Shown here piece by piece: positions 11,601 through 38,600 of a DNA stretch of 64,000 nucleotides. A program made the position numbers and the translations under genes. Each line of letters starts with the position of its first letter. The first letter of the stretch is position 1. The notes beneath the pieces are model-generated. The model was not told the origin of the DNA and made no database searches. It saw nothing but the letters and a program-made list of their open reading frames with translations. Source of the DNA: Orbicella franksi (lineage: Eukaryota); contig OZ116703.1 of assembly GCA_964199315.1 (NCBI GenBank), positions 26,040,001 to 26,104,000 of the forward strand, given 5' to 3'.

Positions 11601-14600
11601 TTGGACTTTGCACGACGACTGAACAATCCAAGCCATGCCAACCGTCCGAGCAGGTGGTGCAGTTGACGTCTCCGCGCCAGTTAGGGTCACACGAACACAA
11701 TCCCGTGGTCTTATTGCAGAGACCATTGTTAAAACATGGCGTAAGTGGCCCACCAGGACAATCATACTGACATGCTAGACCCCAGTGTCCATCGTTGCAT
11801 GAACATGTGTAGGTTTCACTAGATATCTAGAGAAAAAAAATACCGTTTAAAATGTTAGATGCGTGCGATATTTGTGTCATTTTCAGGGTAAATTTGAAGA
11901 GACGTATGGCGTAAAGGAGTAGGGTACATTAGAACGGTTTTCATTTGAGTATCGAAAGTAATTCGCGTTTACTTTAGCCTTGCATCACTACGCCAACCGA
12001 TTGGTTTGAAAAACTCGCGCCTCTTTGTTATCCAATCAGGAGTAAGACAAAAGCCAATCGTGACCCACTCCCTCACGTTTTCCCGAGCTACAAGTCAGCC
12101 AGACATATTTGCTTTGGGTTTTGATTGGTACACAGGATGGTCCGAGTAATTTGTGACTGGTCACTTTGGTTTTGATTTTACAACCCTCGCCTGAGACTAA
12201 GGTGAAAACGCTTTATCCTTATCACATGATTTATTTTGTCAATGCCAATTTATTTTCCTCACCGTAATAGTTTGATAATACGGGAATAATTGATTTCCTT
12301 TGTCAAATAACATCTGTACCCCTTCAGTTTACCAGGGGAAGTGCTATGTAGTGGCTAGTCGTGTTTTCCTTGAAAACTGGTGTAGTAGTTTTTAAGTAGA
12401 TAAGGGAGTCAAGAAATAAAAAATTTGGATTCACAACACTGACAGACTCGAACTTACATTGTTCATCTGAGCCTCACTGTCTGTACATCTCATGGAGTGG
12501 ACCATAGACGAATCTACTACCGCTGCATTTCTCTCGTTGGATACTGGAAATGCTACAATCCAGGCTATTGGATACGAGTCTTGCAATCTGTGTGAAGGAA
12601 AAGAAGGAACTCTGATACACGTAGAGCATTATTAAAATACTGTAAAAAGGAAAATCGAGGGAAAGAAAAATTCAGCTCATTATTAGCTGAAAACAAATTA
12701 TTTGCAATCGCTAATAGTAAATTGTTCTACTCAGCAGAACAGACCTTTTGACATATTTCAAGAACCATCAGCGTTAAACACTACATTGTTACAAATTGCG
12801 TCCTACATTTTTTTTTCTAACTGGGCAATACCAAAATTTTTAATGATATATTTTTATCTTGAGAAAAACAACTCAAGGTATTCTGGCAAAACAAAAGGTA
12901 TGAGGCTTAAACCATTAATTCAACATTTTTCTTGCAACCTATCAACGAGTATCTCTTTTGACGGTTGAAATCTGAGTTGTATACGGCACATGGCTGATGC
13001 AGTTCAAACAAATAATGATCAGCAGCTAGTGAAAGTGAACGTAATTTAAGTTCAATCGTACCTTACTATAAAAGCTTTGTCATGTCTACCCGGTGCAAAC
13101 TTTTGAGGTTGACCATAATCTTCAGTTGATAATGGGATCAGGCTACTGGTAGTATTGTCAGAGCCACTGAGTTTGCGAACAAATCCGCTCAATCCACCTG
13201 GAACAATATTTAGATAAGGCCTCGAGAAGAAGTTGCTCGGTCCTGTGTTCAAGTACACGTTGTGAGGATTTCTGTTCCGGTAACCAAACCAAGCAAACAC
13301 GTCGCCTTGAGCGGTGTTGTACAGGCAATTCAGAAAGGGTTCCACTGGGTGTTTACCCCAACCTCCGTCCAGTTTGTCACGATACTGAGCATGCGTAGAG
13401 ACGCAATCGACATTACACCTCTCTCCTACGTGTGCCTCATCGCAGACTGTACAGGTCGGTAAACCCCAGCCAAAGACACATTGGTCACAGCTTGTTCCAT
13501 TCCAGTAGCCCAACTGTGAGTCATTATGACACGTGCATATGTCTTTGTTTTGCCCTGTTCCATTGCCATGGACACAGTTAACGTCGCAGCCAACCGCCCA
13601 TCCAATATAGTTTGCTACGCATTTTTCGCATTCAGATCCAGTAAACTGAGGTAGGCAACGCTCGCACGAGCTCCCATCAAAGCCATGGTTACATGCACAG
13701 GTTGGAATGTCACCCATCAGCGTACAGTTCCCTCTGTCACTACACATAGGTTGACCAGGGCAGACAAGTTTGCTGCAATCATCACCATCAAATCCTTGAT
13801 TACAGAGGCACACTGCCGTGGCAGGAGAGCCTTGTTGCACGCAAGCTCCTCGTCCACTGCAGTCTGGTTCTCCAGGGCAGTTTAACGTTTCACAGGTTTG
13901 GCCCTTCCATCCTGGGTCACAGTCACAAACACCTTGTCTGCAAGTTCCTTGTCCAGAGCATTCGATGTCACAAGCCAGTCCGGTGTAACATGGATCACAT
14001 TGGCAAATAACGCTGTTTGGTGGATATTCGTTGCCGTGTACACACGGGAATTCACACGAAGGACCCATCGTGTTGTTTGTACAATTCACACAGATAGGGG
14101 GATCGACGCCTCCGTAGCAAGTTCCAAGTGCGTTGCAATCTGGCACACCAAGGCAGTCGGGGACATCACAGCCCTGTCCTTTCCATCCATTAAAGCAATC
14201 GCACTGCTGTGTAACTAGCAAACAGACACCATGATTACTGCAGTCTACCCCTTGGCCTGGACAACCCACTGTTTCACATTTAGCCCCTCTCCAACCGCTG
14301 TCACAAACGCAAACGCCCTGTTCACACTTGCCGTGACCATTGCATTCCGTGCCACAGTCAACTCCAGTATGACAGGCTCCACATTCACACGTATCTCCGC
14401 TTGAAGACTTAATTACTGTGCCATTAATGCAACGTTGGTTACAACCTTCTCCCATGTAACCCGTGTCACACGAGACACAAACTGGAGGATCGTGAGCCAG
14501 TCCATCACAGATTCCATGCCCACTACAATTTCCACCGCCTGCACACTGGGGTATATGGCAACCTACACCAGACCAGCCGGGTCTACAGTAACATAGACCT

Positions 14601-17600
14601 AAAGCAGTAATACAGGAGCCATGGCCAGAGCAGTCAGATCCCCAGCCAGGACAACCTTTCGTGGCACACGTGGAACCTCGCCAGCCTTCAAATCCACAGT
14701 CGCATGTATTATTTGTACAATTGCCATGTCCAGAGCACTCCTGGTCGCACGATACACCACTGTAGCAATCATGACACTGACAGACAAATAAACCATCGCT
14801 TGTTTCTTGGGGAGTACCATGTTCACATTCAGTCTCACAGGCTCGACCCATCCACCCTTTATCACAAGAACAGAAAGATGTGAATCCAAACGTCTCACAA
14901 GTACCATGGCCTCCGCACATTGGGGTACCGGGGCAAGCAGGCTCCTCACATCCCCGTCCAGCCCATCCTGGATTGCAGTCACACGTCTGAGTGGCGCTGT
15001 TACAAGTACCGCGTCCAGAACAATCGAGGTTGAACAAACCGGGGCACCCTTTCTTTTCACAAAATTGTCCACGCCAACCTTCAAAACCACAGTAGCATGT
15101 CTCATTAACGCATGTGGCATTAGGTCTCGAAGAACAGAACTCATCGCACTCTATTCCACTGAAGCAAGGCTCACAGTCACAAATGGTTGGATCATCTTTG
15201 TTTTGAGTGCCGTTTACGCAAGGCGTTTCACAGGCTATTCCTGCCCAGCCTGGCTCGCAGTCACCACAGTAAGGAGTCTCAGCTGGTATACATTGACCTC
15301 GATTGTTGCAATCAGGTTCACCAGGACAGTCAGTTTGCTCACAGCCAATCCCTGTGCAACGGAAAAGTTCCAATCAGATGTTATTACCTCAAATTTTGCC
15401 TTACTTTTCTATTGAGCATATAAATGAAACTTATTACATGATATAGAAGTAACCAATCACAGTAGAGTCCTTCAGGAGAAAAATGCATGTTACGTTGTAT
15501 TTTAGTGGGATTCTAAATAATTGCATTATGACAATACCCAAGAGCGTACAATCGAAAAGGCTAAAAAGGTGACTCTGAATACGACACATTTGATCAAAGT
15601 TGGTTCCTTAAACTAAAAGAAGCAAATCGCAAATAACTTCAACGCTATGTTAATAAAAAAATACGCCCTATAAATCTAAACACAATCAAGAGCGTATAAA
15701 AACAGCCTTTTTTAAATTTTTAATTTTTAATTTTCGTGTAACGCAAACAGACAATGTAATTATTCGATGGTTTAAAGGGCTGTTGCGTTCCTTACGCTGA
15801 AGCACTACAGCGCAGTATCAACACTGGGCACAATGCACGAAAACTGCAACAACATTATTACCAAGAACCAGATGGAAAATCACACGACATAATTTTTCCA
15901 TATGTGTCAGTTCCCAGTAATTGTAGGGCTCGTTAGGATGTAGTCGCTCGGACGGAGTGCTATTGAAAATTAAAAACGGTTTCCTTATTGTTTAGTGCTT
16001 GGTGGGATTGACCAGTTCTTTCTTCACCTAATAATCTCTCCCATGTAGGCAACAAGTTGTGGTCAGGTATAATGGCAAAATATCAAACATAAATAAACAG
16101 GCTTACCACTCCACCCAGCATCGCAGATACACGTTTGTAAAGACGTCAGACATTGTCCATGCCCTGAGCAGTCTTTCTTGTAACCAGGACATCCTTTCTT
16201 TTCACAATATTGTCCTCGCCAGCCTATAAACCCACAGTCGCATTGTCCATCTACACACTGAGAACTATGGTTGGAGCACAGCATGTCACAGGCGGCTCCA
16301 TTGTAGCACTTGTCACAGACGCAAATATGATCACTAGTTGGAGTCCCAAATTTGCAGGGTTTTTCACAAGCTACGCCCATCCATCCTTTTGAGCAATTGC
16401 ACTTTGGTGTTTCATCGTCTGTTGTGGGTGCAATACACGTGCCATGCGCATTGCAGTCAGGGGTACCAGGGCAGTCCGGAATATCGCATGCCCGACCTGA
16501 CCAGGCAGGATCGCATTGGCACTGCTTGAGCGCTCCGTTACAGCTTCCATGATTGCTACAGTCAAATGGGAATCCGGGACAACTTTTGATCTCACACACG
16601 TCACCTTTGAATCCCATGTCTTTATCGCATATACACTTGTCATTTACACAGCTACCATGTAACGAGCATTCAAGATCACAACCAGATCCAGAGAAACACG
16701 GGTCGCAAATACAGCCTGAAGAGTTTCCGTAGTTTGTTCCATTTATGCAAGGCAGTTCGCACATCTCACCAGCCCACTGCGGCTCACAATTGCACCTTCT
16801 TGGATTTGAGTTGCTACAACTTCCATGGCCAGAACAGAGCGGTTTTCCTGGACAGTCTGGGGTGCTACAATCGTCTCCGGCCCATCCTTGCGCGCATATA
16901 CATTTCTTAGAATTTGTGTCACAAAAACCATGATCAGGGCTCGTACATTGCCCTGGACATCCCGGCAGCTCACAGTATTCCCCCATAGCAGCAGCTCCTG
17001 GCTCTTGGCCACAATTACATTTGTTGTTGATGCATTCGCCAAACCCGGAACACTCACTTTGGCATCCACTTCCAGTGAAGCAGGGATCACAGACGCATAT
17101 ACCATCTTTAGGGTGACCGTGCACGCAGGGATCGTTGCAAGCTGGACCCATCCAGCCTTGAATACAGTCTGTGCACTCTGGTGTCACGCGATTAGTTGTG
17201 TTACAGTGACCACGACCAAAACAGTTTGGAATACCGGGACAATCCGGGATGTGACACCCAACACCAGTCCAACCTAAAAAGTAGACATTAAACGATATAA
17301 AGTAGTAAGATTTGCATTCCTCACAGGCTGATTAAAATATATCCATAAAGTAACCACAAGATTCGTGCCAGTGTCAGGCATGATCAACAAAAACGGTACA
17401 TTTGCAAATTAACTGTAACTTATAAGAGGACACTAGGTGCAGTTGTATTCAGTCAAGAATAGTAACCGAAGAACAAATTAACCTCCTACTGTCATGGCTT
17501 AATCATATGAATATAAAATACTGTCGTGGTTTAATTATATGAATATAATCAACTGAAAACTCTCCAAGCTTTGTAAGAAGATAATGAAATCTTCCCCGCC

Positions 17601-20600
17601 AAATCAGATGCAGACATAGAACCAATTGGAAGTTGACTGTCTGTCAAATATTGAACTGCTTTACATCGAGGACTGTTTCTATGCCTGCAAGAAAGGCTCC
17701 CATGGTTTCGGTTAATGCTTTATCCTGCCAAACAAGACCTTCCGCAATAACACAACCAAATGTTCTCCTTTGCCTACCTGGTAGACAGATGCATTGATGG
17801 TTTGCACTGTCACATTTTCCATTTCCACTGCAGTCTCTTCCATTAGAACCTGGACATCCAGGCACTTCACATAGGGAGCCTCGCCAACCAGTGAGTTGAT
17901 CACACTGACACTTATTTCCGACACAAATTCCGTGTCCTGTGCACTCCACATTGCATCCGCGACCTGTGAAGCAGTGATCACAGACACAATTTCCACTGTC
18001 CATTGGCACCTGTGTTCCGTTTGTGCAAGGATCTTCACAAGCAGGACCCATCCAGCCAGCTATACAGTTGGTACACGTCGGAGGATTAGAGCTTTCGTTG
18101 CAGAAACCTTGAAAAAATAAACAGACAAAATGAACGAGAATGCAAAAGGATGAAGTCACTATTGTTAGACCTGCTGTGTGAATCCACACCCTATCTGTGT
18201 GTGTCTCTCTGTCGGTCTGCCTTCCTGTCTGTCTTTCAGAAGAAAAAAAGATTCTGACTGTAAAAGGCTATGCTATCTCGCAAGGCTCACTTTTACATGA
18301 GACTACTAACAACAAAATAACAATAATTGTCTCCGACATAATTGAAACGTTCAAAGTTTCCCTATGGTAACGGCCTTTTTGTATCTAATGGTTACAATCT
18401 AACCCTCTTATTGAATTAAAGTAATTTCACCCAATTGACTGCAAAGTACAAAGCAAGCAGCTGTTTCTCAAATACAATACTGGACAAAAAACTCTATGAA
18501 ACTAAATTTCAACTATTTGAATACTTTTACCTCTGTTTGCACAGTCTGGATTTCCAGGACAGTCTGCGATGTGACATCCATCACCTGTCCAGCCATTCTG
18601 GCAGATACATGTATGAAGGGCACTGTTACATTCGCCATGACCCGAACAATCCTCACCATCTCCTGGACATCCGGGATTTTCGCAGAACGTTCCGCGCCAT
18701 CCAACATCACACTGGCACTTGTCATTCACAATCGTTCCATGTTCTGAGCATTCACTGTCGCACCCTACACCCACCCAGCCTGGCTCACAAACGCAGTTAC
18801 CGCTGTCCATTGGAGTCTGTTGACCGTGTACACAAGGATCATTGCATGCTGGTCCCATCCAGCCCTTAGAGCAGTTTTGACACTTAGGGGGATCTACAGA
18901 AGCGTTGCATAGTCCTCGTTCAAAGCAGTTAGGGGATCCTGGACAGTTGGGGATTTCACACCCCTGGCCAGCCCAGCCTTCGTTACATGTGCAAATGTGG
19001 GTGACTGAATTGCAGATTCCGTGGCCTGTGCAGTCGGATCCAATACCAGGACAGCCTGGGTTATCACAGAGGTCTCCTCGCCATCCCACATCACAAATAC
19101 AGCTGTTGTTGACTATTTTACCGTGCTCGGAACATTCACTATCACAACCAACACCTTAAAGAAACCAAAATAGCAATTATTTATTTTGGTAGGTCAGTCC
19201 ATAGAAAATCTATATATCAACCAAATCACACCTATAATCCGCGAAACATCACACCTCAAGTAAAAAGTATCGTAATTACGGTAGTTTTAAAGTTACATAG
19301 TGATAGTACCTGATAGCTTTTCTCTTACCTGAGTATCCTGGCCAACAGACGCACTGTCCACTGTCCATCGGAACTTGTTCTCCATACTTGCATGGGTCAG
19401 CACATGCAGGTCCCATCCAGCCAGGAGTGCAGTTTTGACATTGAGGAGGACTCATAGTAGCATTACAGTACCCGCGGTCATTGCAGTTGGGTGCGCCAGG
19501 GCAGTCTGGAATGTGACAACCGATACCTGCCCACCCGGGGTAGCACGTGCACTCGTGACTGGCGCTATTGCAGTCACCATTACCAGTACAATCTTCACCG
19601 AGGCCAGGACATCCAGGCACTTCGCAAACGTCACCTCGCCAGCCTTTGAGAGGATCACAGTCGCAAATGCCGCTTTCCGAACACGTACCACGACCCATGC
19701 AAAGAGAGTCACAGCCTTTCCCAGCCCAGCAAGGTTCGCATTTGCAAAATCCACTGTCCATTGGTTCTTGAACACCATGAACACAAGGATCATCGCAGGC
19801 TGGGCCCATCCACCCGATGGAGCAGTTAATGCACGTCACGATGGTGCCGTTTATGGTTGCACATGTCCCCCGATTATAACAATCCGGCTCGCCTGGACAG
19901 TCAGGTTGGCTGCAGTCGTCGCCACGCCACCCCGGGTTACAGAAACACGTGAGAAGGGCACTGTTGCATATGCCATTTCCAGAGCAGTCGTTTGGACACT
20001 TGGGAACTTCGCAGTAATCGCCCTTCCATTTACTGTCGCAGATACAGGTATCATTATTGCACGAGCCGTGTCCTGAGCATAAAGAATGGCAATGCGTTCC
20101 AATGAAGCAGGGATTGCATTTGCACTTGCCGCCAATGCAACTACCATTATCCGAACATTCGTACCTACAGTCCTCGCCGGTATAACATGGATCACACACA
20201 CACTTTCCAGTCACGCTGCATCGTCCATTTCCATGACAGTCACGTGTTGCGTTACAGTGATGTTCGCATCGATAACCAACATAGCCGGGATCACAGTCGC
20301 AGCCGCCAAACGCAGCGCACCGTCCGTGTCCAAGACACGTGATTGAGGGATCGCAGTGGTACCCACAGTTCACGCCATAATATCCTGCATCGCACGTGCA
20401 ATTTCTTTGTTGAGCTGAAAATGTTCCGTGTCCACTGCAGTGGTGACCGTCTGAACAAATTTGTCCATTGTATCCGTTGCCAGCACTCCCGTTACCCTTG
20501 GCGCCGCCGGATACATCCCTGTTTCGAATAACGTCCCGCCTTATGTGATCGGGTGAGAAGTGACGAAGGTGTCCCCCTCCACCCCCACCACCATCGTAAT

Positions 20601-23600
20601 ACTTCCAAGTACGGCAAGGATTGCCACTGCAACATTCAGAATGAGAGCTCCCTATACCTCCTTTGACAGTAAGGTGGCCGTGTCCTTCAAAGTGTCTCCC
20701 AGCAACCCAAAGAGTTCCACCGCTCGCCCCGCCTCTCCCAGTGTCTCCATCACTTCCATCTGCCTTGATTGAACCATCGAGCTCCAAGAGGTTCTCAACA
20801 CTTACGTACGCGATTCCTCCACCGGAAGCTGAGCTCCACCCTCCGCCACTTCCGGCCTGTTCAGCGGTACATACATTTTCGTAAGGGCTACCACCTGCAA
20901 AATAAAGAGGGTCTCACAATACATGCAGATGAAACAAGAAAATAGAACACAACATCTCTAATGGCACTGCTTATTCTTCGGCGTAAACACACCACTTAGT
21001 CTACACGTTCGTTGTCATGACGTGAAGGAGCTAACAGTAATAAGATATATTTGACCAGAACAATGTTCCTGTGAAATAGATATACTTCCTATATTATTTC
21101 CAGCCCCTGGCTACAAAAACCACCTTGAAATGACTAACTTCGGGGCTATGAAGAACGTTAATCAGCATAGTTATTTTCAATGTATTAATGTTGCTTTTAG
21201 TAATACATGATCAGTTGCTAGAACATTGTAACCTAACAGTCGAATTACAAAGATAAAAGCAATAACTAAATCCTTAAAAAATGCGAATTATTCGTTTGAA
21301 GGACTTAGACCCGACGAAATGTCTGCCCTCTGCTAACCCTCTGCGTTTAGACGATGCCCCAGTCACGTTAGGCCACCAAAACGAACAAATGTTCGTACCT
21401 GCAGTTGAACTACTTGGACAATGCCCACATCCAGTCCAATATCCGGAACCTCCTGCGCCACCATGACCAGCCCCAAATACTCCTGAGCAGGTTCCAAGGC
21501 TTCCAGGCCCCTGCTGGGAAGGCCAACCAGAATACGACGCGTCGGTGGTTGCGTCAAACTCAATGCTGAAATAATCCGTCAGTACGTTGACAGTATCGGC
21601 TTTGAGTGATCCAGTGTAGTCTAGTGCAGTTTCACGAACATGGAGATGCACCGATTGGGTAGCGATGTTCCGGGACGAACTCTGCACTTCAAAGATCGCC
21701 CCAAGGGAGATTTTAAGCTTCCTGAACCAGTAATGGCCGATGGTAGGTGTTGTGTAAGTGGTGTTACATTCCAGGCAAGCTGACTGGCCTTTTTCTGTTA
21801 CAAGGGTGGCAACATTGGAAGACAATCTTAGTTCCTCTATGCCGTGGATTTCACCGTTGACTGTCAGAGCTGACGTCCTGGTACCTCGTAGGGTGGTACG
21901 AACGGGAAGTACAATCTGACCTCCTGTATTCGCTTGGTAGTTGACGGGCGCTTCGGTGCGAATGCTGTGCGTCTCAGCGTATATCCGGGTATTTTGTAAC
22001 GCAAGTAACAAGCCCGTTTTGTCACCTGTGGCTTTTCTGGCGTACAGTTCTGAAACCATTCCAGAAACCTTAAAGAAAGTAAACAACGATCCTTAACAAC
22101 GAACCTAGGATTTCCCCGAGGATTACAGGGCACTAATAAACTGCACAGAAACGTCCTCCTTCATTTTTCAGTCATTTTAGTAATCATAAAAAAAGTGTCC
22201 TAAAGAAAATGACTTGACCTAAAAGTTTGGTGGAAAAAGAATCCAGCCAGAAGTATCATGTGAGATACATCTCTTGAGAGTTCTAAAGAATACACCAAGA
22301 TAAACTCTTGTTCTTAGGCCATCGTAGCTTGAATAAGAATATAATACAAACCACGGTGATAAACGTTGTATTCCGACGCATTTGAATTGAGAACTTGACG
22401 TTTCGTACGCTATAGTCAACAAGAATTTTCAAAAGTGACCATTACAAGTTTTGAAAACTATGTATCGTAAATGTTAGAGGTGTGGAACCTAGACTGAGAA
22501 AAAAATGATCTGCAGCAGTACGTTAATCTGTCTAGACATCATGAGGAGAAACAGCAAGTAAAGCAACAACTTCTCACTACTGACATTGACATATAGGGAA
22601 GGTTTTAGCACTTGAATGAACAGAGTCTCCCTAATTTTGCAATGAAAGTCCGTTTACCGGACTTTAAAATGTCAAAATGATCCCATTTTACGTTGTAACC
22701 AGTGCGGTTTTCACATGAGCAGCAATGGCTGAAGAATGGTCCCTATATGATAAATTTTGGACCTTTTAGCTCACCTCTTTGATCGCGAGTGCTCCTCGCC
22801 TGACTAGGTGAATTCTCTCAAACCGATAAAATGCAGTGTTCGTTTCGGCCAGTGTCACTAGCAACAGATCGTCCCTGTTGTTGTTATCAATCTGTATCAC
22901 GCGATAAGGCTCTTCTCCTACATTTACATCAATGTAAACTGTTCCTGGACTTCCATGTCTGTTGGTGCCACTGCTGCCACCTAAGGCAGTCAAGGCACCT
23001 CCGAAGATGAAGCTCTCTGTGAGGTTCACCGCAATACGCCCCCCTGAACCAGCTCCTTCATAACTGGGACCTGAAATAGTCACATGTGAGTTTAAAATTT
23101 CGTTTGCAAATGCTTAAAGTACAAACAATTTTTTTTTTTTCAGGTTTAGTTACAATTGTATATATTTGCAAATACAAAAGTGAGGATCATTTCTTCGCTT
23201 GACATTAACATGTTCATAACAAATGTAAGACAAGGCTGAGAGTTCAGTTACGCTTTTGGTTCAAACATTGAATTATTGCCTACTAAAGTTATTTCAATTG
23301 GTTTAAAGCACGTTTGGCACAAAATGTGACCCCAAAGTAATCTACGATAACAATGATTTAAGCGAGAGAATCTAGAACCAGCAAAATTTTAAAGTCTAAC
23401 TGGATACCATTTCTAACTGGTGGCAACTCTAAAGAATTTCTAACTGTAATTATAAATTATATTATATTTTAAATTGCCGTGTTTTTCTTCTCGCGAAATT
23501 CAAATAAATTGCCGATGTTGGTGTGAGGAATGGAGGCGGAACGAATTCTTCGATCACTTACTTGGTGGACGTTTACAAATATGCTAAAATCATCCTAATA

Positions 23601-26600
23601 CAGACCTCCGTGACACTCAATGGTTCCATATCCTTTGAGGAATAAGCTCTTCACAATGATGGCTCCACCGCTTCCCCCACCGGACGAGCTTGACGACTCC
23701 CCAACACCATTGGCTCTGATTGTTCCTTCCACAATCACATGACCTCCGGTCTGAATATAAAGCCATCCACCACCAGCACCGTAGCCACCACCACTTCCGG
23801 GTTCTTGGGGCCAGTAAACAGAGCCATACTGACTCCCGGAGGCTGCTCTACCACCTGGTGAGGCATGACTTCCACCCGTATGTCCAGATCCACTTCCAGG
23901 GCCACTTCCGGCTGGGTAACCAGCACCTAACGAGTCTATCAGGCCCCCACGTTCGACAATGACGTAGTCGGCGTTGATAGTCACATGGTTTGTAGCAAGG
24001 ACAAGTTGACCGCCTGATAAAAGGTGAAATTTAAGAATCAAAATATTTAGTAAGGGGATCTTTCTTTTACGTTAACCAGGTTTAAAACAGCGTTGTCGTT
24101 GTCAAGGTTCCATAGGCTGGGTTCTCGCAATCTCAAATTTTCTTGGAACGGTACATATTGCACGTCATACAAAACCCCCATCTTCGCCAACAAGTCTTGA
24201 ATTTGACAATGACTGCTTGGAATGTAAATATGCAGTTAAGGATGCCGGCATTTTAGGGTAGAATCTACAGTTTAAAGGCAGTGGCTGTTGTGTTGCTATT
24301 ACCACATTCCACGCTTTGCCTTCAGTAAGCCTACGGGCTATTACTGCAATGAATGAGAACAAGGTCCGGTCGTTCAAAACACGATTAGGCCAATGTATGT
24401 TTGGTGCGACTTTCAACATCAGATTTTTTCCCAGTTTTTTAGTACGCGTTTTGTTTATATCTTACCGTATGCCATTCAGTTTTGACTTTGATAAATGTAA
24501 CACTCCACATAAACAACGAAAATAATAAAAGACACTCTTCACTTAACTTGTAATATTGGATTCGCGCTAATCTGCCCTCAAACAACTGAGCTCAAAACTG
24601 GCAGTATAAGATGGAATGCACCCACCTTTTTTCACATTCGTGTCTGCAATATCAAGAACAACTCTGACAGGTGTCATGGTAACTTTAACCACGCCCACAT
24701 TGTTAATGATAAGCTGAGGAATGATGATGAGACCGGGAGTGAATGGATCAAATGGATTATCAGCCAGCCACTGCGACTCTTCAGGTAACATAGCAGTGTG
24801 TGCTGTACCTCCAAACTCCACCATGCCATTTCTCTCAAGAACAAGCTTTTCTACTCCAGTTAATCGTCCTCTTATGGTCGAACTTTCGCCACGTAGAATC
24901 ACCTCTGTGGGAAAGACAACCTCGGCATACTCCTCTACGAAAAATCCACACGGGGCGTCCATATAAGTGTGTGTAGACTCTACCACAAATACAAACAAGC
25001 GCTGTCTGGCCACCAGTTTGATGATTCCAGTCTTATCTCCTGTAACTTCGTGAGCGATGACTGTCACATTCTTTGCTTTCTCCGGGTGGTAGAAGGTCAC
25101 TGTGGAATGACCCTCGACCTGCATCTCGTCAAACTCGTAAAAAACCGTCTGATTTTCCATGATGACAGTCGGCGTAGCTACGTTGTTGTCTTCGTTGTTT
25201 ACCTTCACTTTGGCGTGCTCGGGTTTGAAGGAGGTTAAGTTCGCATCAGGGTTGTACTTGAGTTCACGGTATTGCGGACCGCGACGACTTTCGTACTTGT
25301 AAACCGTACCAGCTGCTCCAGCGTTATTGGGATAGCTAGAGACGCGGCCGCCAACGGAGCGGAATTTACCTAAAAAGTATAAACCTATCGATCACTAGAT
25401 TGTTCACTAAACTGCGAAGAGTATTCCAATTCAATCCCGGATACTAAAATAACAGAGTACGTCTACCGCAAAAAACATTTTAAGAGTGTTGTGCGATACG
25501 TGGTCACGTTTGAAAACTTGGTATACTTTAATGTGCAATGCATTTCTGAAGAGCTGTCTTCTAGATGACTGCTCGTAACGGTGATGCATGGTGAGCATAC
25601 GTCAGTCTAAAACACCAAATTGAAGGACCTTCAGCGATTCGTTAGGGACATAAAGGGATATAGTAACCAGACTTAATTAAACAAAACCTTCGTGACCGGT
25701 GGATTTGTACTAAAAGCGTAAGATCACCAACTTTGTAGCCACGTGTTTTTAAATTGGCGTGTATTCACGTACCACCAAAGTTATTTTGGAAATCGACATG
25801 AATTCCAATTCTTCCGCCTGATCCTCCTCCTCCATCACTTGGCGCGTCTCCCCCATTGACGTTGATTTCGCCATGTCCAGTGATGTTGGTTGTCTCCACA
25901 AGGACACTTCCTCCGCTACCTCCCCCACTGGTACTGGTTGCACTCTGCCCTTTCGATGATATGAGGCCGTCAAGGTGAATACGTTTACCAACTTGCCACC
26001 ACAGCGATCCTCCGCCTGAAAAAAAGTTTGGACAAAAAAGAAACAAAGTCATTGTCCAAGTGATCTACAAGTTAAGAACTAATTAATTTTTTTCGCGATG
26101 TCTCCTTCAGGTGATTCATCGGTTGTTTCTCTCATGTGGCTAGCTGAGAATTGCATCAGTCCTACATTCAATCAATAACGTTTAAATGAGAAACCTGTTT
26201 AGAAAAATGATAATCCAAATGGAACTCACCTGCGCCTCCACCATTCAGTTGCCCATGTCCTCCCCCACTACCAAGAGACAATGGTCTATAAACAGATCCG
26301 TAAGCACCACCTCCGTGATGATTATTGTACGACTGTCCTCCGCGTCCACCAAATCCACCTCCAGATCCTGCGCTATTTACAGAGGTCGAGCCTGCACCAG
26401 GACCGGTAGCTGCCTGGTGCCCAGCACCATCCAGCAGAACTTCACCTTTAGTTTCCACTTCAGCGAAGGTGGAATAAAATATGCCGTGGTTCACTTTCAC
26501 GGTTCCTTTGTGGAGCACTTCGAAAACAGATGACGTAACGGAAACAAGAACCTCCTGCACACGCACCAGGTCCAAGAGACCGCCTTGTTTGATTATGACA

Positions 26601-29600
26601 TGGGCAAAGGAGCAGTTGCCAGGTCGTGTGATGTCGACGTAGGTTCGGTTCTCCGTTATTGCTGTTTGTGCTGATGATGCTATCTTCAGGGTTGCTCCGT
26701 CCTCGAGGAAAAGAAAGTGTACTCCGGTCATCAGGCCATAAAGCTCAGACCGAACCCCATGGACATGGAATTCGGCAGGAAGAACGATCTCAGCTCCCTT
26801 GTCGATGCGATAACTGCATGGCGCTTCAGTTTTGTTTGTTTCAGATTCGACAACCTCCACATAGATAGTTTGGTTAATTCTCAGGTGGAATTGTCCGGTT
26901 TTGTCTCCAATGAACCTATGCGCTATCACTGTAACTTGGGTCTCATTTGGATGGTAAACGATGAGTCGTGAATGTCCAGTTAGCTCAACCTCATCAAACT
27001 CATAATGAGTTGTTCCTTCCTCCATCAGGACAGTGGCTTCAGGTACGTCATGTCCCTCGTTATCTACGTGTAAATATGTGTGATCCACAGCTAGGTAAGT
27101 CGTGTTCGTCTCTTTACTATACTTCAGTATGCGGTACTCAAGTGGACGCACATTTTCTTCCTTGTAAACTGTTCCTGCGGGTGCACCATGGTCGTTCTGC
27201 GTTCCAAATCCACCACGGTCAGTGAATTTGCCACCGTAAGTATACCTCCATCGGCAATGTATTCCTACTCGTCCCCCAGAACCCCCTCCTCCAGCTCCAT
27301 GGTTATAAGAAGACCCGCCGGTGACAGCAATCTCCCCATGTCCGGTCATATTTGTTGTCTTGATAAGAATGCTGCCACCACTGCCACCACCCGCATTTCC
27401 TCCATCTCCTTTGCCACCTTTGGCTGAAATAAGGCCGTTCAACTCAAGACGCTTACCAACTTCCCAGAGAAGCTGTCCTCCTCCACTCCCACCCGTTCCC
27501 CCGCCATTACCACCTCCACTACCAAGAACCAAGGGGCGATAAACTGAACCGTAAGCTTGTCCTCCTTCACGAGCCCCTTTTCCTCCATGACCAGCACCAG
27601 TGCCGATCGCAGTACTTCTTCCGGCACCAGGTCCCTTTTCGGCAGGATTGCCTCCTTCGTCCAAGTTGAAATGACCTTGGCTGTCCAACCAAGCAAATGT
27701 TGAAAATACTTTACCGTGGTTCATGTTCAGTTTCCCTTGATATTTTATTTTTAATTCATCAACATTAATTCTCAAGAATCCTGTGTTTTTACGGAACTCG
27801 ATATCCCCACCTTTCTTAACAATAACGACAGCAAACGAAATATTTCCTGGCTCTGATATTGCAATGTAGTTGTTGTTTTCTATGAGGGCTGTCTGTACCG
27901 TTGAATAGAAATCAGCAGTAGCACCGAACGAAACCAACAAATCCCGAACGCCAACGATCATTCCTTCAAAGATTGACCGAGTGCCATGCATGGAAAATTC
28001 CGATGGTAAAATGATCTCCCCTCCGACGTCGATCCTGTAACTGCAAGGCGCTTCGGTTTTGTTTGTCTCTGACTCTATATACTCTACAAAGATCTTTTGA
28101 TCTCGACGGATGTGAAATTGTCCACTCTTATCACCGATAAATTTATGTACCACAGCAATGACGGTAACATTTCCAGGATGGTAGACCAGAAGACGTGAGT
28201 GACCCGTTAACTCCATTTCGTCAAATTCGTAGTATGTCGTGTTTTCCTCCATCAAAACAGTTGCTCCGGGTACATCGTGGCCATCGTTGTCGATGTGTAC
28301 GTACGTGTGATCGACAGCTAACATGGTAGTGTTCGTTTCTTTCATGTATTTAAGATGACGGTACTCAAGAGGTCTAAAGTTCTCTTCCTTATAAATTGTA
28401 CCGGCAGGACCCCCATATCGGCCCTGCTGACCTCCATGGTCTGTAAACTTACCCCCGTATTTGTATCTCCACCGGCAATGAATTCCGACTCGTCCACCAG
28501 ATCCTCCACTTCCCGAACCGGTTCCAGAACCTCCTGGGACAGAGATTTCACCGTGTCCAGTCATGTTCGTAGTCGTTATTAAGATGCTGCCACCACTACC
28601 TCCCCCGGCATTCGTTCCTGTTCCATCAGTTCCCTTTGAAGACAGCAGCCCGTTGATCTGAAGTCTTTGACCAACGATCCAGAACATCGATCCTCCGCCA
28701 GAACCACCCACTCCTTGGCCATTTCCTCCACCACTGCCATACATCCGAGGAGTGTAAACAGAATCATAAGGGATTCCACCTTCTCCATGATCTGTTTTTC
28801 CACCTTCCCCACCGTGACCAGCCCCAGATCCTACATTGTTTTGGGTTGTACCATGTCCAACACCCTCTTCCGGGCCAAATCCCGTTCCATCCAGGGACAA
28901 GATACCTTCGCTTTCTATCCACGCAAATGCCGAGTAAATGTATCCGTGATTCATTGTCATCAATCCTTCATATTTGATTCTGAACTCGGAGCATCGTAAG
29001 CTCAATGTGTAGTTAAGAATACGGCTGAAAGTCAATTTTGAATTCCTTTCAACAGTTACCGTAGCAAATGAAAAGTTACCTTTCTCGTCTATCTCTACGT
29101 ATCGGCGATTCTCAACTCTGGCAGTTTGAGCAGTAGAAGAGAACTCCACGAACCCTTGACTTGCGATGATCAGATGTTCTACTCCCGTTATTCGTCCTTC
29201 TATAATGCTCCTAGTTCCATAAATGTTGACAACAGCAGGGAAGACAACTTCAGCTCCTTGATCAATCTTGTAACTACACGGTGCGGTGGTCTCATTGGTC
29301 TCCGATTCAACGACTTCCACGTATATTGTTTGGTTCACCCTTGCATGAAATCTTCCTAAGCCATCTCCGAGGAAGCGGTGAATGATGACAGTGACATTAG
29401 GACTTCCTGGAGGATGTTGGACCTGCAGGTTAGCGTGTCTAGTGAGGAACAACTCATCTAATTCATAAAACAAATGTTCACTCTCTAGCATCATTGAAGA
29501 CATCTCAGTTTTGCGATCTTCATTGTCAACTTCCATGTACCTGTGGGTTGCAGTGACGTAAGTCGTATTCGTACTCTTGTCGTACTTCAAGTCCGCATAT

Positions 29601-32600
29601 TGTGGTCCTCGCGCAGTTTCTTCAACGTACACTGTGCCTGCTGCAGCATTAGTTTTCCCTTCTCCTCCGTAGGCCTTGTAAACACCGGCGTACTTGTGCC
29701 TAAAACGAACATGGGCAGAAATTCGACCACCTGAGCCACCGGATCCACTGGGACTTGAGCCGTCTCCTCCCATAACATTAATTTCTCCATAACCGGTAAA
29801 ATTTGTTGTCTCGATGAGAATGCTTCCACCACTACCGCCACCAGCGTTTACACCAGAACCGTTGCCACCTCGCAAGGTGACAAGTCCATCTAGCTCAATC
29901 TCCTGACCAATTCTCCAATGAAGCATACCCCCACCAGATCCACCTCGTCCTTGTCCGTTACCCCCGCCACTGCCAAGATGAACTGCTCGGTATATGGAGC
30001 CATAGGGCTCTCCTCCAAGCTGCCCTGCCTGGTGAACACCACCTTCACCGCCATGACCCGCTCCCGATCCAATCAAGTTTTTCGTAGTTCCGGATCCAGG
30101 ACCCATCTCGGCTGGATGCCCAGTGTGGTCCAAGACAAGCCTGCCTTCGCTTTCCACCCAAGCCCACGATGAATCAATTTCACCGTGATTGATGTTGACT
30201 AATGCATGATACTTCAATCGGAAAATGATCGCTGTAAAGACCAGCGTGTTGTTGATGCGAGAAAACTCAAGCCGCGAGCCTTTCTGAACGTACACTTCTG
30301 CAAACGTAATGTTACCAGGTGTGGTAAGGAATCTGAATTTCTCGTTTTCTTTGATACCAGTCTGGGTGGTTGAAGCAAAAACAACATCGGCACCCTCGGC
30401 AACAATGAGCCGATGAACACCCACAACCAGACCCTCAAAGAAACATCTAGTCCCCAGAAGCGTCAAACTCGACGGGAACACTATTTCCGCACCTTGATCT
30501 ATCTTATAGCTAACAGGAGCAACACTGTAACCCGTTTTGGACTCTACAACTTGAACAAACATCTTCTGGCCTGGTCTAAGTTGGACAAGTCCTGTTCGGT
30601 CCCCAGTGAAGTTGTGGACAACAAAACTTGAATTGTTACCGTGTATGTGGAGCAAACCGTGATTCTTCATTTCTAATTCATCAACCTCGTAGTAGGAGCT
30701 GTTTTCGTTGATGATTATTGTCGCTATATCGGGATTACGATCGACGTTGTCCACTGTAAGTTTTGTAAATCCCTCGCCGAACACGGTGTGGTTTGCTTCG
30801 TTGATAAGCACTGGCCTGTGAGTAAGTCCTTGGTTGGTGTCTGTATAATACACAGTGCCACCCGCTCCTGCTTTAAAACCTGTCACGAAGGGAAAATGCC
30901 ATAAGCAATTTACTAACTTTATGCTTCCTTTATTCTCTTCCCGAATTACCTCACTTGTCATTTATAGTTATCTGTAGGAATTTACAGGTAGACAATGGGG
31001 TGTTTCCTGGTTGATCTTTTCCTTTACTCTTGTTACCCGTACGCTTGGCAACGCATTATTTCCAATAGGAGAAATAAAAACGTGAACATGATTTAACATT
31101 TTAAGAGGGTTTATCGGAACAAGGTCAAATAGAGTTTTATAACAGCGTTAAATTGCCAATGAAAACGGTAGCTTTTTATCTTAAACCATGGTTGTTTACC
31201 ATTTACCCAAAACTCCGGAAATTTTGATCAAAATGTAAATGGCAAAACAATTTTGGCTTGGCCGAACGAGAAATTTTCAAAATAAATGGAACACGTTGAA
31301 AGGTTGTCCAAAATTTCCAACCAAAATTTCCGAGTAAATGTGCTTACCATTTGCAATTCTTCACCGCCATCTTGGAATTAGGATCAGGTTGAACTCGTCC
31401 TAGTCTCTTTCGGTAAACTGGGTTTTTTTGAGTAAAAGGTAAATGGCCAATCCGAACGGAACTTACCATCAGGCATTATTGCTTACCATTTACACAAACC
31501 GTTGACGAACCGGTTTCTCTGTGTAAATGGTAAACAACCCATATGTCACTTCTGGATAAAATGAGCAGACAAAGAAAAAATGGCGGCCATAAAAAAGTGT
31601 AGATGGGAGCAACAACAGTTATCTTAATACTATCTCTAAAACAATATCTCCGAATTATTTTCTATGGCATAAAACCATTAAGACCAACCTGCCATCGGTT
31701 GAAAGCTTTTCAACCAATCATAGCGTGCGTCGGAAATGGCTATTACGTAGTACCAACACTTAGACAATTCTACTCACCTGTGCCACCATAAGCCGTATAT
31801 TGGCCAGAGTATTCCCTTAACCAGGCAACGTGCACTGCGATACGCCCACCGGCACCGCCACCACCATTACCATCCCCACTTCCGCCATCAGCGACCACCA
31901 TTCCGTGTCCAGAGAAAAGGATGGTTTTGATCAGAACACTACCTCCACTGCCACCTCCACTGTTAGAGGCGCCATTTGCACCTTCACTCTCGATGATGCC
32001 ATCCAAATGAAGAGAATATCCGACTGTAATCTACGACACGAAAAGCAATGTAAGTTTAGGTTCCATTGTTCCTTGTGGTTCCATTGTGCGATCATCAATC
32101 ATCATCACGACATGGCTTTCTTCAAATCCACATACATTTATGACTTTGCCTTGAAAGCCCATCTTTTGCGATCAGCTTACAAATTAGTTCGCGGCTACGA
32201 ATGTATATCATGTTATACTGTGCTTGTCACGTTAGTAAGAGCCTTTTACAACATCAAATCACAACAGAGCAACGGTACAACAGGCACTAAGTTCATAAAA
32301 GAAGGAATCCCCACGACCACTATAGCGTAATACTCGATGGCTAGCGTTTCCACTAGTCAGATTCCGCAAAAAAGAGTATTTTTGTTTTGCACACCGCTCA
32401 CAACATCTGAAACTCACTCTCTCGGTACAGGTGAGGTTAAATTAACGAATAATTTTAGTTAGTCACTCTTGCTGCGTTCAGCTTTCGCATTTGTAATAAC
32501 AAGTGACAACTCTGCCAAAATATGTTTTCAGCAAACACTTCACAAGAATAGTTTCTTCTCTAGTCAAAGAGACTGGAAGAAATACAAAACCTCACCTAAA

Positions 32601-35600: not shown

Positions 35601-38600
35601 GGATAGGGTATAACGGTACCACTGCCAAACTCAAGTGTGGAGAAACGGAACGTGCCAAAGTCATCAATAAACCGATATTTTCCTGCCGCGATGCCAGCAG
35701 TGTGAGCGTAAAATCCAATTTTGATCGTTCTGTCGTAGGCAATGTAAAAGTGCTGAACGTTGATTAGACGTCCGTTCCATTCGAACGCCACGTCCCCTCG
35801 TCCGACCACGTGAACTGAGGTTGCCATTATGGCGTTGGAATCTCTGTCAAGCTTGAAGTTTGCGGCCGTCCTGGTGATCGTGTACACAGCGTCTAAGAAT
35901 TCAGCTTTCAGTGTTTGGTTCGCATGGACATGGATCAATCCTGTTCTATCGCCTTCCACTTTGTGCACAGTCAAGTTCAAGCGCTTGCCGTCGGGAACCA
36001 AGTGAATAGCAGCCTTGCGCACGAGATGGAGCTCATCAAAGCTATAAGCCTTTAAGCTTTCATTGAGCGTGACGTAATGATCCCATGTTCTACCTTTGTT
36101 GTCTAGGCGAAGCTGAGTGTGGGCGTATTGATTTCGTGTATCTTTAAGAAACACCGTGCCGGGACCACCAGCGTACAGAGTTGTGTCTTTTGATGGGTCA
36201 CCAGATCTCCCACCAATGGAAGTGTACTCACCTAGATATTTGTTTTCCGTTGGTGTATCAATTGCAATCCGTCCACCAGATCCACCACCAGAATCAAGAC
36301 CGGCACCAGCACCACCATTTGAAGAAATCAGGCCGTGACCACTGAATCTTCCGCATTTGATCCAAATACTACCCCCGCTGCCACCACCGGCACTTGATCC
36401 ATCACTAGCATCTTGTCCTTCATTTGCTATGGTGCCATCTACGTACAGTTCATCTCCTATAGCCATGAATATAAGTCCACCACCCTTCCCACCATCACTG
36501 TTTCCGGGACAACCTGGGGTGCCGTAGTGGTCAGGTGTAAAGAGACTGCCATGTGAAGCAAGCTCGTTGATGTCACTGTGGCCTGGAAAAAGTACAAAAT
36601 GGCCAAAAAAAATAACAATTTTGAAAAGTAGAACTACATTTGCATACTTAATTTTAAAATCCTTATCTTTATCTCGAATGCATAAGGGAAAATAAGATAC
36701 TGTATATGAAATGGTCAAATCACTTTACGTAGCAAATGCTCAGGACGATTCATGATTCATTAAACTGCTTTTTGTTCTCGTAACAGAGATGTTGAAATAT
36801 GCAGTTGAACCCGGCTATTTCGAACTCTTTGGGGAAACGAAAAATAGCTCGAATTAGCGGGAGGTCGAAATAGCCGATAGTTAATGACTGAAGGGCAAAT
36901 CCCAGGGAAGTTGTTTTAAGTTCAAAATAGCGAGGAATTCGAAATAATCGAGTTCGAATATTTTAGGGGGCTCCAACTGTATTTATGACACTAAAAAGAG
37001 TGGTTGAGACAGGTTATAGAACCGATAAGATTCCTTATTTTTGAAACTACACATTTTGTTATTGAGGCTAACAATACCTTACCTTTTCCTCCTTTACTTC
37101 CATAACTGCCGCCAGAACCTCTACAAGAACTTGGAAGAACGGCGGTTTCGTAAGGACCTGGACGATCTTTTCCAGATGCAGTGATTGTACTTCCGGTTTC
37201 AAGGAGGAGCGACGTAAGGGCAATGCGATAAGTGTCTGCGACAATAACGGATCCGTATTTCATGTGAACTAGTCCAACTGTGCACTGCATTCCATGAACG
37301 TCAGGAAAGAATACTTCAGAGCCATCTTGAATCTCAAACGTGGCCAAAACAAAGCTGCCTATAGCACTTACAGCTAGGGTGCCATTATGCAAATCGGCTG
37401 AATGAGCGTGGGACAAGAACCTGGACTTCAAACGCTTGGTGATAAATAAGTGAGTAACATCTATCATTCTGCCATCGATTGTGAAAGATGAGTCCCCAGT
37501 TATTTGCCCAGTTGCCTTTGCTCCATCTCCGATCACGTACAGCGACGCACCAAAGACCATTTCGGCGTCCTTGTCTATCCTCAGGTTAACAGCTGGTTTG
37601 GATACGCTGTGCTCTGTGGCAGACGCTTCCAGGTAGAATGCTTGGTTGGCACGGGCATGAAGTAGGCCTGTTCGATCTCCGAACAGTCGCGTCATTTTCA
37701 GAACTGTTCTTTCCTTTCTCACAGCCATGTTAAGAGCCGCTCTTCTGAACAAGTGAACTTGCGAGAAATCGTGATCAGTGATATTTGTTTCATCAATTGT
37801 CACTGGATCTTGAACGGAACGCATTAGGTTGTCAATTCGCAGCTGAGTAAAAGGCCTCTTTGAACGAATATCGTGTAAAAACACCGTACCGGGTCCACCA
37901 TACGTGCCTGGAAGAGAACTTCCACCAAACGCTGAGTAGGTTCCCCTGTAAAGATTCTGGATAGAGTAGATAGCAATCCTACCTCCGGAGCCACCACCTG
38001 CATTGGCTCCTCCTCCATCACCGCCAGTTGTGCTCAGTGCTCCATAACCTTTAAGGAGAAAAACATATATATTATCCGAACGAATTTTTAATCGGATCCT
38101 CTAAAGTTTTTAATAGCAATTGTTTATTATGTTTGGGATTTGTTATTCCTTGGTGTCCTGAATTAATGAAAATTTTGCATCGTCTTAGGTAAAAATGTAT
38201 CAATTAGGGGCATTGCTACATTATGTACTGATAGCGTTTTTTCTCCGATTTTTGCAATCGGTCTGGTAACATTTTGTGGGAAAATATTATCTGCTGTTTT
38301 GGCTAATTTAATGTCTAAGCTTCTAGAACAAAACTTACCAATGAAACTGTCTGTCTGAAATAGAAGGCTTCCTCCGCTTCCGCCTCCAGCCTCTCTTCCA
38401 GCTTTAGCACTTCCACCTTCTGCCGTAATGGTACCATCATTGATAAGCAAAGTGCCGGCTTCTATCTTCACATAGCCCCCTCCACTTCCCCCGACATCAC
38501 TACTACCTGCTCCGTTTCCGCCCCTGCGACCGGATTCCTTTGGGTGGTAAAGAGAGCCATAGTAGGAGCCTCCAGCAGCTCCTCCATAACCACTTCCGCC

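Follow-up and report, generated by a model that had tools for sequence, protein, structure and literature searches.

Why should a protein assembled from epidermal growth factor-like (EGF) modules carry, in neighbouring modules, two cysteines that are either both present or both absent? EGF arrays are among the commonest extracellular building blocks of animals, and their disulfides almost always lie within single modules. The question was raised by a 64,000-nucleotide stretch of the Orbicella franksi genome (assembly GCA_964199315.1, contig OZ116703.1, positions 26,040,001 to 26,104,000; hereafter the window), in which a very large gene filling the window encodes an EGF array on the minus strand, with array exons lying within 20913-13055 and a spliced five-exon product of 2001 amino acids. 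A first-pass annotation of this DNA had proposed that the two cysteines form a disulfide across adjacent modules, and that the few junctions lacking both act as hinges. We found that the pair is all-or-none in this gene and in its relatives, and that a disulfide across the module boundary is the probable explanation (at roughly 0.7, from homology and structure prediction).

After a short non-periodic head, the array follows a four-module period of about 128 amino acids in the order C-D-A-B. Modules B and C were ordinary six-cysteine EGFs. Module D starts three residues after C, lacks both Cys1 and Cys3, and holds cysteines here labelled a, b, c and e, plus an additional cysteine, d; module A starts three residues after D, lacks Cys1, keeps Cys3, and holds cysteines f, g, h, i and j. 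The D-A linker is compressed to C6-x3-C2, with Cys1 missing. In the resulting order a, b, c, (d), e, f, (g), h, i, j, the variable cysteine d stands three residues after Cys5 (C5+3) and g is the Cys3 of the next module, giving the motif b-x-c-x-x-[d]-aromatic-x-G-x-x-e-x3-f-x5-[g]-x4-h-x-i-x8-j. D-A junctions thus showed what the first-pass annotation had described, a module type without Cys1 but with Cys3, preceded by an extra cysteine in the last loop of the module before it. All four exons tested against Pfam matched EGF_TEN (PF25024) at 99-180 bits, with a cut-off of 65, and EGF_Teneurin (PF23106) at 98-158 bits, with a cut-off of 24.3, and the nearest solved sequences in a PDB search were teneurin-2/3, followed by reelin and mastigoneme EGFs. 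Six cysteines per module, with the module's own C1-C3, C2-C4 and C5-C6 bonds, were found in neither D nor A, and the array is a variant of the teneurin/tenascin-type EGF repeat, not its canonical form.

A scan of the spliced product located 13 D-A junctions (numbered J1 to J13): cysteine occupied d and g together in 11, was missing from both positions in two, and in no junction stood alone. The 11 junctions with both, hereafter stapled, read DPCY, NPCF, EPCW, DHCF, DPCF (twice), DKCY, EPCF, HDCY, GACH and DPCY. Their d and g codons, all on the minus strand, lie at 20187-20185 and 20139-20137 (J1), 20109-20107 and 20061-20059 (J2), 19731-19729 and 19683-19681 (J3), 17973-17971 and 17925-17923 (J6), 17082-17080 and 17034-17032 (J7), 16698-16696 and 16650-16648 (J8), 16308-16306 and 16257-16255 (J9), 15166-15164 and 15112-15110 (J10), 14767-14765 and 14719-14717 (J11), 14374-14372 and 14326-14324 (J12), and 13990-13988 and 13942-13940 (J13). 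At the two unstapled junctions, on the same strand, d is glycine and g isoleucine: J4, which reads WPGYSG and continues as VGCDSECSEHGKI across the intron at 19328-19155, has its glycine at 19338-19336 and its isoleucine at 19116-19114, and J5 (EPGWVG...SEHGTI) has them at 18780-18778 and 18732-18730. Glycine is the residue found at that place in ordinary EGFs. The 11 both-cysteine copies and their positions given by the first-pass annotation were right, and its count of exactly two cysteine-free copies held for the D-to-A class. For the array as a whole that count was too low, as the 11 C-to-D junctions of the gene, one per repeat, are likewise compressed and have neither cysteine. This C-to-D class was never stapled, contributing 86 and 121 junctions with neither cysteine in the two homologue sets described below.

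Relatives were collected by a HMMER scan of 1.84 billion representative proteins, from which the best 150 matches were used, by a word-indexed search that supplied 48 further proteins, and by a cluster look-up that supplied 10 more; named sources were the hemichordates Ptychodera flava and Saccoglossus kowalevskii, the tunicates Ciona intestinalis and Ciona savignyi, and a mollusc, the bivalve Dreissena polymorpha. In a strict-spacing scan of the best 150 proteins, 75 compressed junctions had both cysteines, 86 had neither and none had one, and d was absent from 39 of the 41 canonical junctions that possessed Cys1. Family-specific D-A units behaved in the same way. Both cysteines were present in 74 units and absent from 7 in the first set (including 9 and 2 from this gene itself), and were present in 100 and absent from 8 in the second protein set, or 174 and 15 when combined (n=189). 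Orthologous copies with just one of the two cysteines were the outcome that the first-pass annotation had named as speaking against its pairing, and the 189 family-specific units included none. In the sole match with d alone (P0022:185-222), the opening part of an A module runs into the closing part of a B module, as if the gene model had been truncated. Where both cysteines are present they are kept over the long term, and the single-cysteine state is not tolerated. The cysteine-free units shared a replacement pair, glycine at d with isoleucine or valine at g. An HMM-based count that placed staples in distant protist-like proteins was rejected, as canonical junctions had been aligned out of register, and the strict-spacing and family-specific scans took its place.

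The arrangement of junction types was also conserved. An order of two canonical, two stapled, one neither, one stapled and four neither junctions ("c c S S n S n n n n") recurred in homologues covering that part of the array, and was shared by this gene, a protein of D. polymorpha, a protein of P. flava and four more relatives. The two unstapled D-A junctions thus occupy specific positions, common to coral, mollusc and hemichordate. One-to-one orthology of repeats with Ptychodera was blurred by repeat shifts and by split or duplicated gene models. Two irregularities were noted elsewhere in the relatives: P0004, P0021 and P0022 carried a 'GCC' doublet in an N-terminal EGF, and P0081:411-464 had an extra cysteine at C5+5 of the preceding loop with Cys1 present and Cys3 absent (SGHGVF), a single case that may be a different cross-module staple made through Cys1, or an error.

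Which cysteines are bonded to which depends on the register in which the D-A unit is read, and here homology and predicted secondary structure favoured pairing of d with g. The stretch from c to e retained the C5-x2-(G)-aromatic-x-G-x2-C6 motif and the spacing of every ordinary module, with d sitting on the conserved glycine. A HMMER profile of 66 units aligned the teneurin C5-x8-C6 to c...e and placed the teneurin Cys1 between e and f, within an insert of 6 residues; since that insert is absent here, the segment deleted in the array would be the one carrying Cys1. AlphaFold2 modelled a stapled unit (14555-14947) with a predicted local distance difference test (pLDDT) score of 95.6 and a predicted template modelling (pTM) score of 0.78, and an unstapled unit (18571-18954) with a pLDDT of 95.4, a pTM of 0.74 and the same secondary structure. 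In all four modules of both models a minor sheet paired residues C5+4 and +5 with C6+2 and +3 (C5+5 and +6 in the longer A-module loop), and a helical turn began at or just before Cys2. In module D of the stapled model, strand 62-63 paired with 69-70, where c is residue 58, e is 67 and f is 71. With a canonical C5-C6 minor sheet predicted in module D, e would act as Cys6 and a c-e bond is expected, leaving d and g for each other. The c-e bond is also the sole one possible in the unstapled unit, whose pattern was identical to that of the stapled unit. Tandem EGF rods, those of fibrillin and Notch among them, have the aromatic residue that follows C5+3 packed against the main hairpin of the next module, at the site of Cys3, and the replacement of the two cysteines by glycine and isoleucine or valine suits two residues in contact. 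The cross-module pairing put forward by the first-pass annotation thus stands in its all-or-none rule and in the register that homology and secondary structure favour, while for the d-g bond itself we can offer inference only.

Several points weigh against a d-g bond, and the first concerns the strength of the covariation. Fisher's exact test on the 13 junctions of the gene gave p = 0.013, yet the two cysteine-free copies are sister repeats and represent effectively one event within the gene. When 81 units were placed in a tree, those with neither cysteine, seven in all, split into one group of six and a single unit (P0074) elsewhere, which needs two changes, and an approximately unbiased (AU) test did not reject a single origin of these units (p 0.83). 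An independent-pairs sign test had two pairs to work with, so that significance was unreachable. The covariation statistic is therefore weaker than the counts suggest, because the tree requires only one or two independent joint changes, and joint loss is evidence of a conserved cysteine parity and not of the identity of the partners. Furthermore, a few relatives carried an extra cysteine near g (SENCVC or SD-C-SGHG-C) and hence odd counts, namely P0151:133 (P. flava XP_070533129) and P0004/P0022, which may be gene-model or sequence errors. Finally, we reached the d-g assignment by elimination from secondary structure and homology, and the e-x3-f-x5-g stretch coincides in spacing with C1-x3-C2-x5-C3 of a complete reelin EGF, so that module A could be read as canonical, with an e-g bond.

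That last observation leads to a rival register, in which A is a complete six-cysteine EGF (e-g, f-h, i-j), D is truncated and closed by a C-x-x-C bond (c-d), and there is no staple; in the cysteine-free copies, the orphaned c and e would re-pair as an ordinary C5-C6 bond. The full stretch e-x3-f-x5-g-x4-h-x-i-x8-j follows reelin EGF spacing, a reelin EGF aligned to it (E = 2e-5), the same spacing occurs in the 'C-PND-C-SGNGI-C' modules of this very array, and joint loss is predicted just as it is by a staple. However, such a register needs different bonding among copies that are otherwise near-identical, and it leaves d...e with the aromatic-x-G-x-x-C6 motif and C5-x8-C6 spacing of an ordinary last loop. 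It is also at odds with the HMMER alignment that puts the teneurin Cys1 in an insert absent here, and with the C5-C6-loop minor sheet that AlphaFold2 gave module D in stapled and unstapled models alike. A two-residue disulfide loop at the start of a hairpin is, to our knowledge, unusual for an EGF. We consider this register unlikely.

Separate from the pairing is the proposal of the first-pass annotation that the cysteine-free junctions serve as functional hinges of a rod that is rigid elsewhere. The coral, Dreissena and Ptychodera proteins share the unstapled positions, which are the fourth and fifth junctions of this class, and in integrin beta the 'knee' is found at an I-EGF module with one disulfide missing. 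Against this, each repeat has four junction types and a staple at only one of them (the others are the compressed C-to-D and two ordinary ones), so that a missing staple is the majority condition along the array, and the two AlphaFold2 models share their secondary structure and differ little in pLDDT (95.4 unstapled, 95.6 stapled) or pTM (0.74 and 0.78). The unstapled units were 61-63% identical to the Dreissena protein and their neighbours 52-55%, a conservation at least equal to that of the neighbours, and their conserved position is equally expected from a two-mutation barrier between the states. The hinges thus found no support here, and we regard such a function as improbable. Free or inter-chain bonded d and g cysteines, giving teneurin-like covalent oligomerization along the array, would have a precedent in the free cysteines of teneurin EGF2/EGF5 that form covalent cis-dimers (PMC9058538), in the position of teneurin as closest sequence relative and in the Cys3-to-Phe change of the first array EGF, but for two cysteines per repeat that are jointly gained or lost, with 15-17 residues separating them at a linker of three residues, a mutual bond is by far the simpler explanation, and with AlphaFold2 packing D against A at pLDDT above 95 we hold this to be very improbable.

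Returning to a d-g bond, in our reading the segment that normally bears Cys1 of the downstream module has been lost between D and A, so that C6-x3-C2 stands at the boundary and the Cys3 (g) of module A is orphaned. The last loop of module D has cysteine (d) in place of the conserved glycine at C5+3, and d and g probably bond across the boundary while D keeps C5-C6 and A keeps C2-C4 and C5-C6. The outcome would be a covalently stapled di-EGF with a three-residue linker and limited movement between D and A, in which the staple may stiffen the rod. In unstapled copies, with glycine at d and isoleucine at g, the module would do without the whole C1-C3 bond. Both and neither would be stable states, as any single-cysteine intermediate has an unpaired cysteine, and this barrier would be enough to explain how the states have been kept at the same positions in coral, mollusc and hemichordate. 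A more elaborate possibility, that the composite stapled di-EGF became fixed in a coral and bilaterian matrix protein with the two unstapled junctions kept as points of flexing or binding, seems doubtful to us.

The gene model on which the junctions depend was supported by transcripts. The four array introns (19328-19155, 18530-18108, 17777-17274 and 16106-15352) are all GT..AG and all phase 1. Splicing was assessed with metatranscriptome contigs, and coral contigs from two runs skipped all four introns at exactly the modelled joints, indicating that the array is transcribed and spliced as modelled, including J4 across its intron. Depth in the RNA contigs was about 73-100 over array exons vs about 5-10 over introns, and single-nucleotide polymorphisms that fell in cysteine codons were all synonymous. 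From X23 and X24, two polyadenylated (polyA) RNA-seq runs labelled as the same species, no array reads (15300-20300) were obtained in the roughly 12% sampled per run, which may reflect stage- or tissue-specific expression or a mismatched species label. Runs labelled coral metagenome contained DNA identical to the intron sequence at 15380-16060. All exons are on the minus strand. The first (19329..20913), based on its EGF_TEN/EGF_Teneurin matches and with its donor joint confirmed by RNA contigs, encodes the end of a Gly-rich region together with the non-periodic EGFs of the N-terminus, and also contains staples J1-J3 and the opening half of unstapled J4. The second half of J4 and all of unstapled J5 lie in exon 18531..19154, both of whose splice joints were seen in RNA contigs. 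RNA contigs likewise covered exon 17778..18107, with staple J6 (DHCF), and exon 16107..17273, with J7-J9; staples J10-J13 are encoded by exon 13055..15351, followed by terminal EGFs and a non-EGF tail. Three of the introns cut module B at one place (G-W-x-G and x-G-C on either side) and one cuts module C (between R-G and x-C), and the exon pattern tracks the repeat yet is offset from module borders.

At the start of the array, the first EGF (20364..20457 on the minus strand; array residues 153-183) retains Cys1 and has phenylalanine in place of Cys3, as in teneurin EGF2/EGF5, a feature separate from the staple; the relative P0013 has tryptophan at the Cys3 site. Just upstream, at about 20614-20634, lies a cysteine cluster with three cysteines here and five in P0013. 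The even totals in both suggest that the first EGF is bonded to the end of the Gly-rich region rather than carrying a free thiol. Beyond the array, the upstream part of the window (about 21-63 kb) holds long exons of Gly-rich repeats without a Pfam match, and the downstream part (about 0-11.8 kb) holds VWD and Laminin-G exons on the same strand. Two open exons built of Gly-rich 'GGxGGxI'-type repeats on the minus strand, at 38166-45815 (2550 amino acids) and 26171-30961 (1597 amino acids), matched no Pfam family above cut-off, and sub-threshold DUF7382 was the only Pfam signal in them. No paralogues of the EGF array were found in this genome, where the family is a single locus.

Should the d-g bond exist, it would constitute a conserved cross-module disulfide in a teneurin-type array and a way to shorten and stiffen rods, and cysteine parity would lock alternative states over very long times, with coral, mollusc and hemichordate alike in their order of junctions. 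For annotation and engineering, counting six cysteines per module would mis-assign both D and A. The finding is a structural detail of an uncharacterized protein and does not extend to its biology.

Among known systems, we found no match to the D-A staple in the literature searched or in structures from the PDB searches. Literature searches on inter-EGF and interdomain disulfides gave nothing relevant beyond teneurin dimerization, and those on mastigonemes gave Chlamydomonas only. When the stapled model was compared with the PDB by Foldseek, the hits were confined to generic EGF rods (Notch, integrin beta, SCARF1), with template modelling (TM) scores of 0.20-0.27 and no D-A template, and PDB sequence and profile searches returned no chain over a D-A junction with cysteine at d, where teneurin has alanine or glycine; one mastigoneme chain (9ufe_BA) carries 'C-FAG-x4-C-DNN-C-SGHGT-C' near its N-terminus. 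Integrin beta I-EGF modules are likewise tandem and EGF-like, are joined by very short linkers and possess a fourth disulfide. They have eight cysteines, and the extra C1-C5 bond lies inside one module; the array's cysteine pattern does not fit this eight-cysteine form, and integrin beta scored 0.20-0.25 (TM) in Foldseek. Laminin LE domains also build a rod of EGF-like modules with a disulfide beyond the EGF core, again with eight cysteines per module and with the extra C7-C8 loop inside the module. The array departs from the eight-cysteine LE spacing, and the corresponding Pfam family, EGF_LMN_ATRN, stayed below its cut-off (16.8 vs 27 bits). The central EGF of reelin (PDB 2e26, 3a7q) has the spacing of e...j, C-x3-C-x5-C-x4/5-C-x-C-x8-C, but its first cysteine is the true Cys1 of an isolated EGF, whereas homology and predicted fold suggest that the equivalent cysteine of the array is the Cys6 of the preceding module.

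The closest comparison is with the EGF repeats of teneurin, which gave the best Pfam and PDB matches and with which the array shares the module type 'C-x-x-x-C-SGHG-x-C ... C-x-C-x-x-GW-x-G-x-x-C'. The protein itself is not a teneurin, judging by its sequence: Pfam searches of the large neighbouring exons on the same strand found none of the parts of the teneurin superfold (TTR, FN-plug, NHL, YD shell, Tox-GHH), and those exons code for Gly-rich repeats, VWD and LamG instead, with matches to VWD, Laminin_G and further EGF or to no Pfam family. Teneurin and the array both leave the six-cysteine rule for a non-canonical disulfide, which in the array is a predicted one. In teneurin EGF2 and EGF5, Cys3 has been lost and Cys1 kept, and the cysteine thus freed makes inter-chain dimers (PMC9058538). 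The aromatic residue at Cys3 together with a retained Cys1 was absent from the D-A junctions and was found only in the first array EGF. At those junctions Cys1 and the linker segment have been deleted, Cys3 has been kept and a new cysteine has appeared in the preceding C5-C6 loop, so that the bond would be intra-chain and inter-module in the array, where that of teneurin is inter-chain. On the evidence of sequence and models, the stapled di-EGF is most likely a structural variant of the teneurin-type EGF array.

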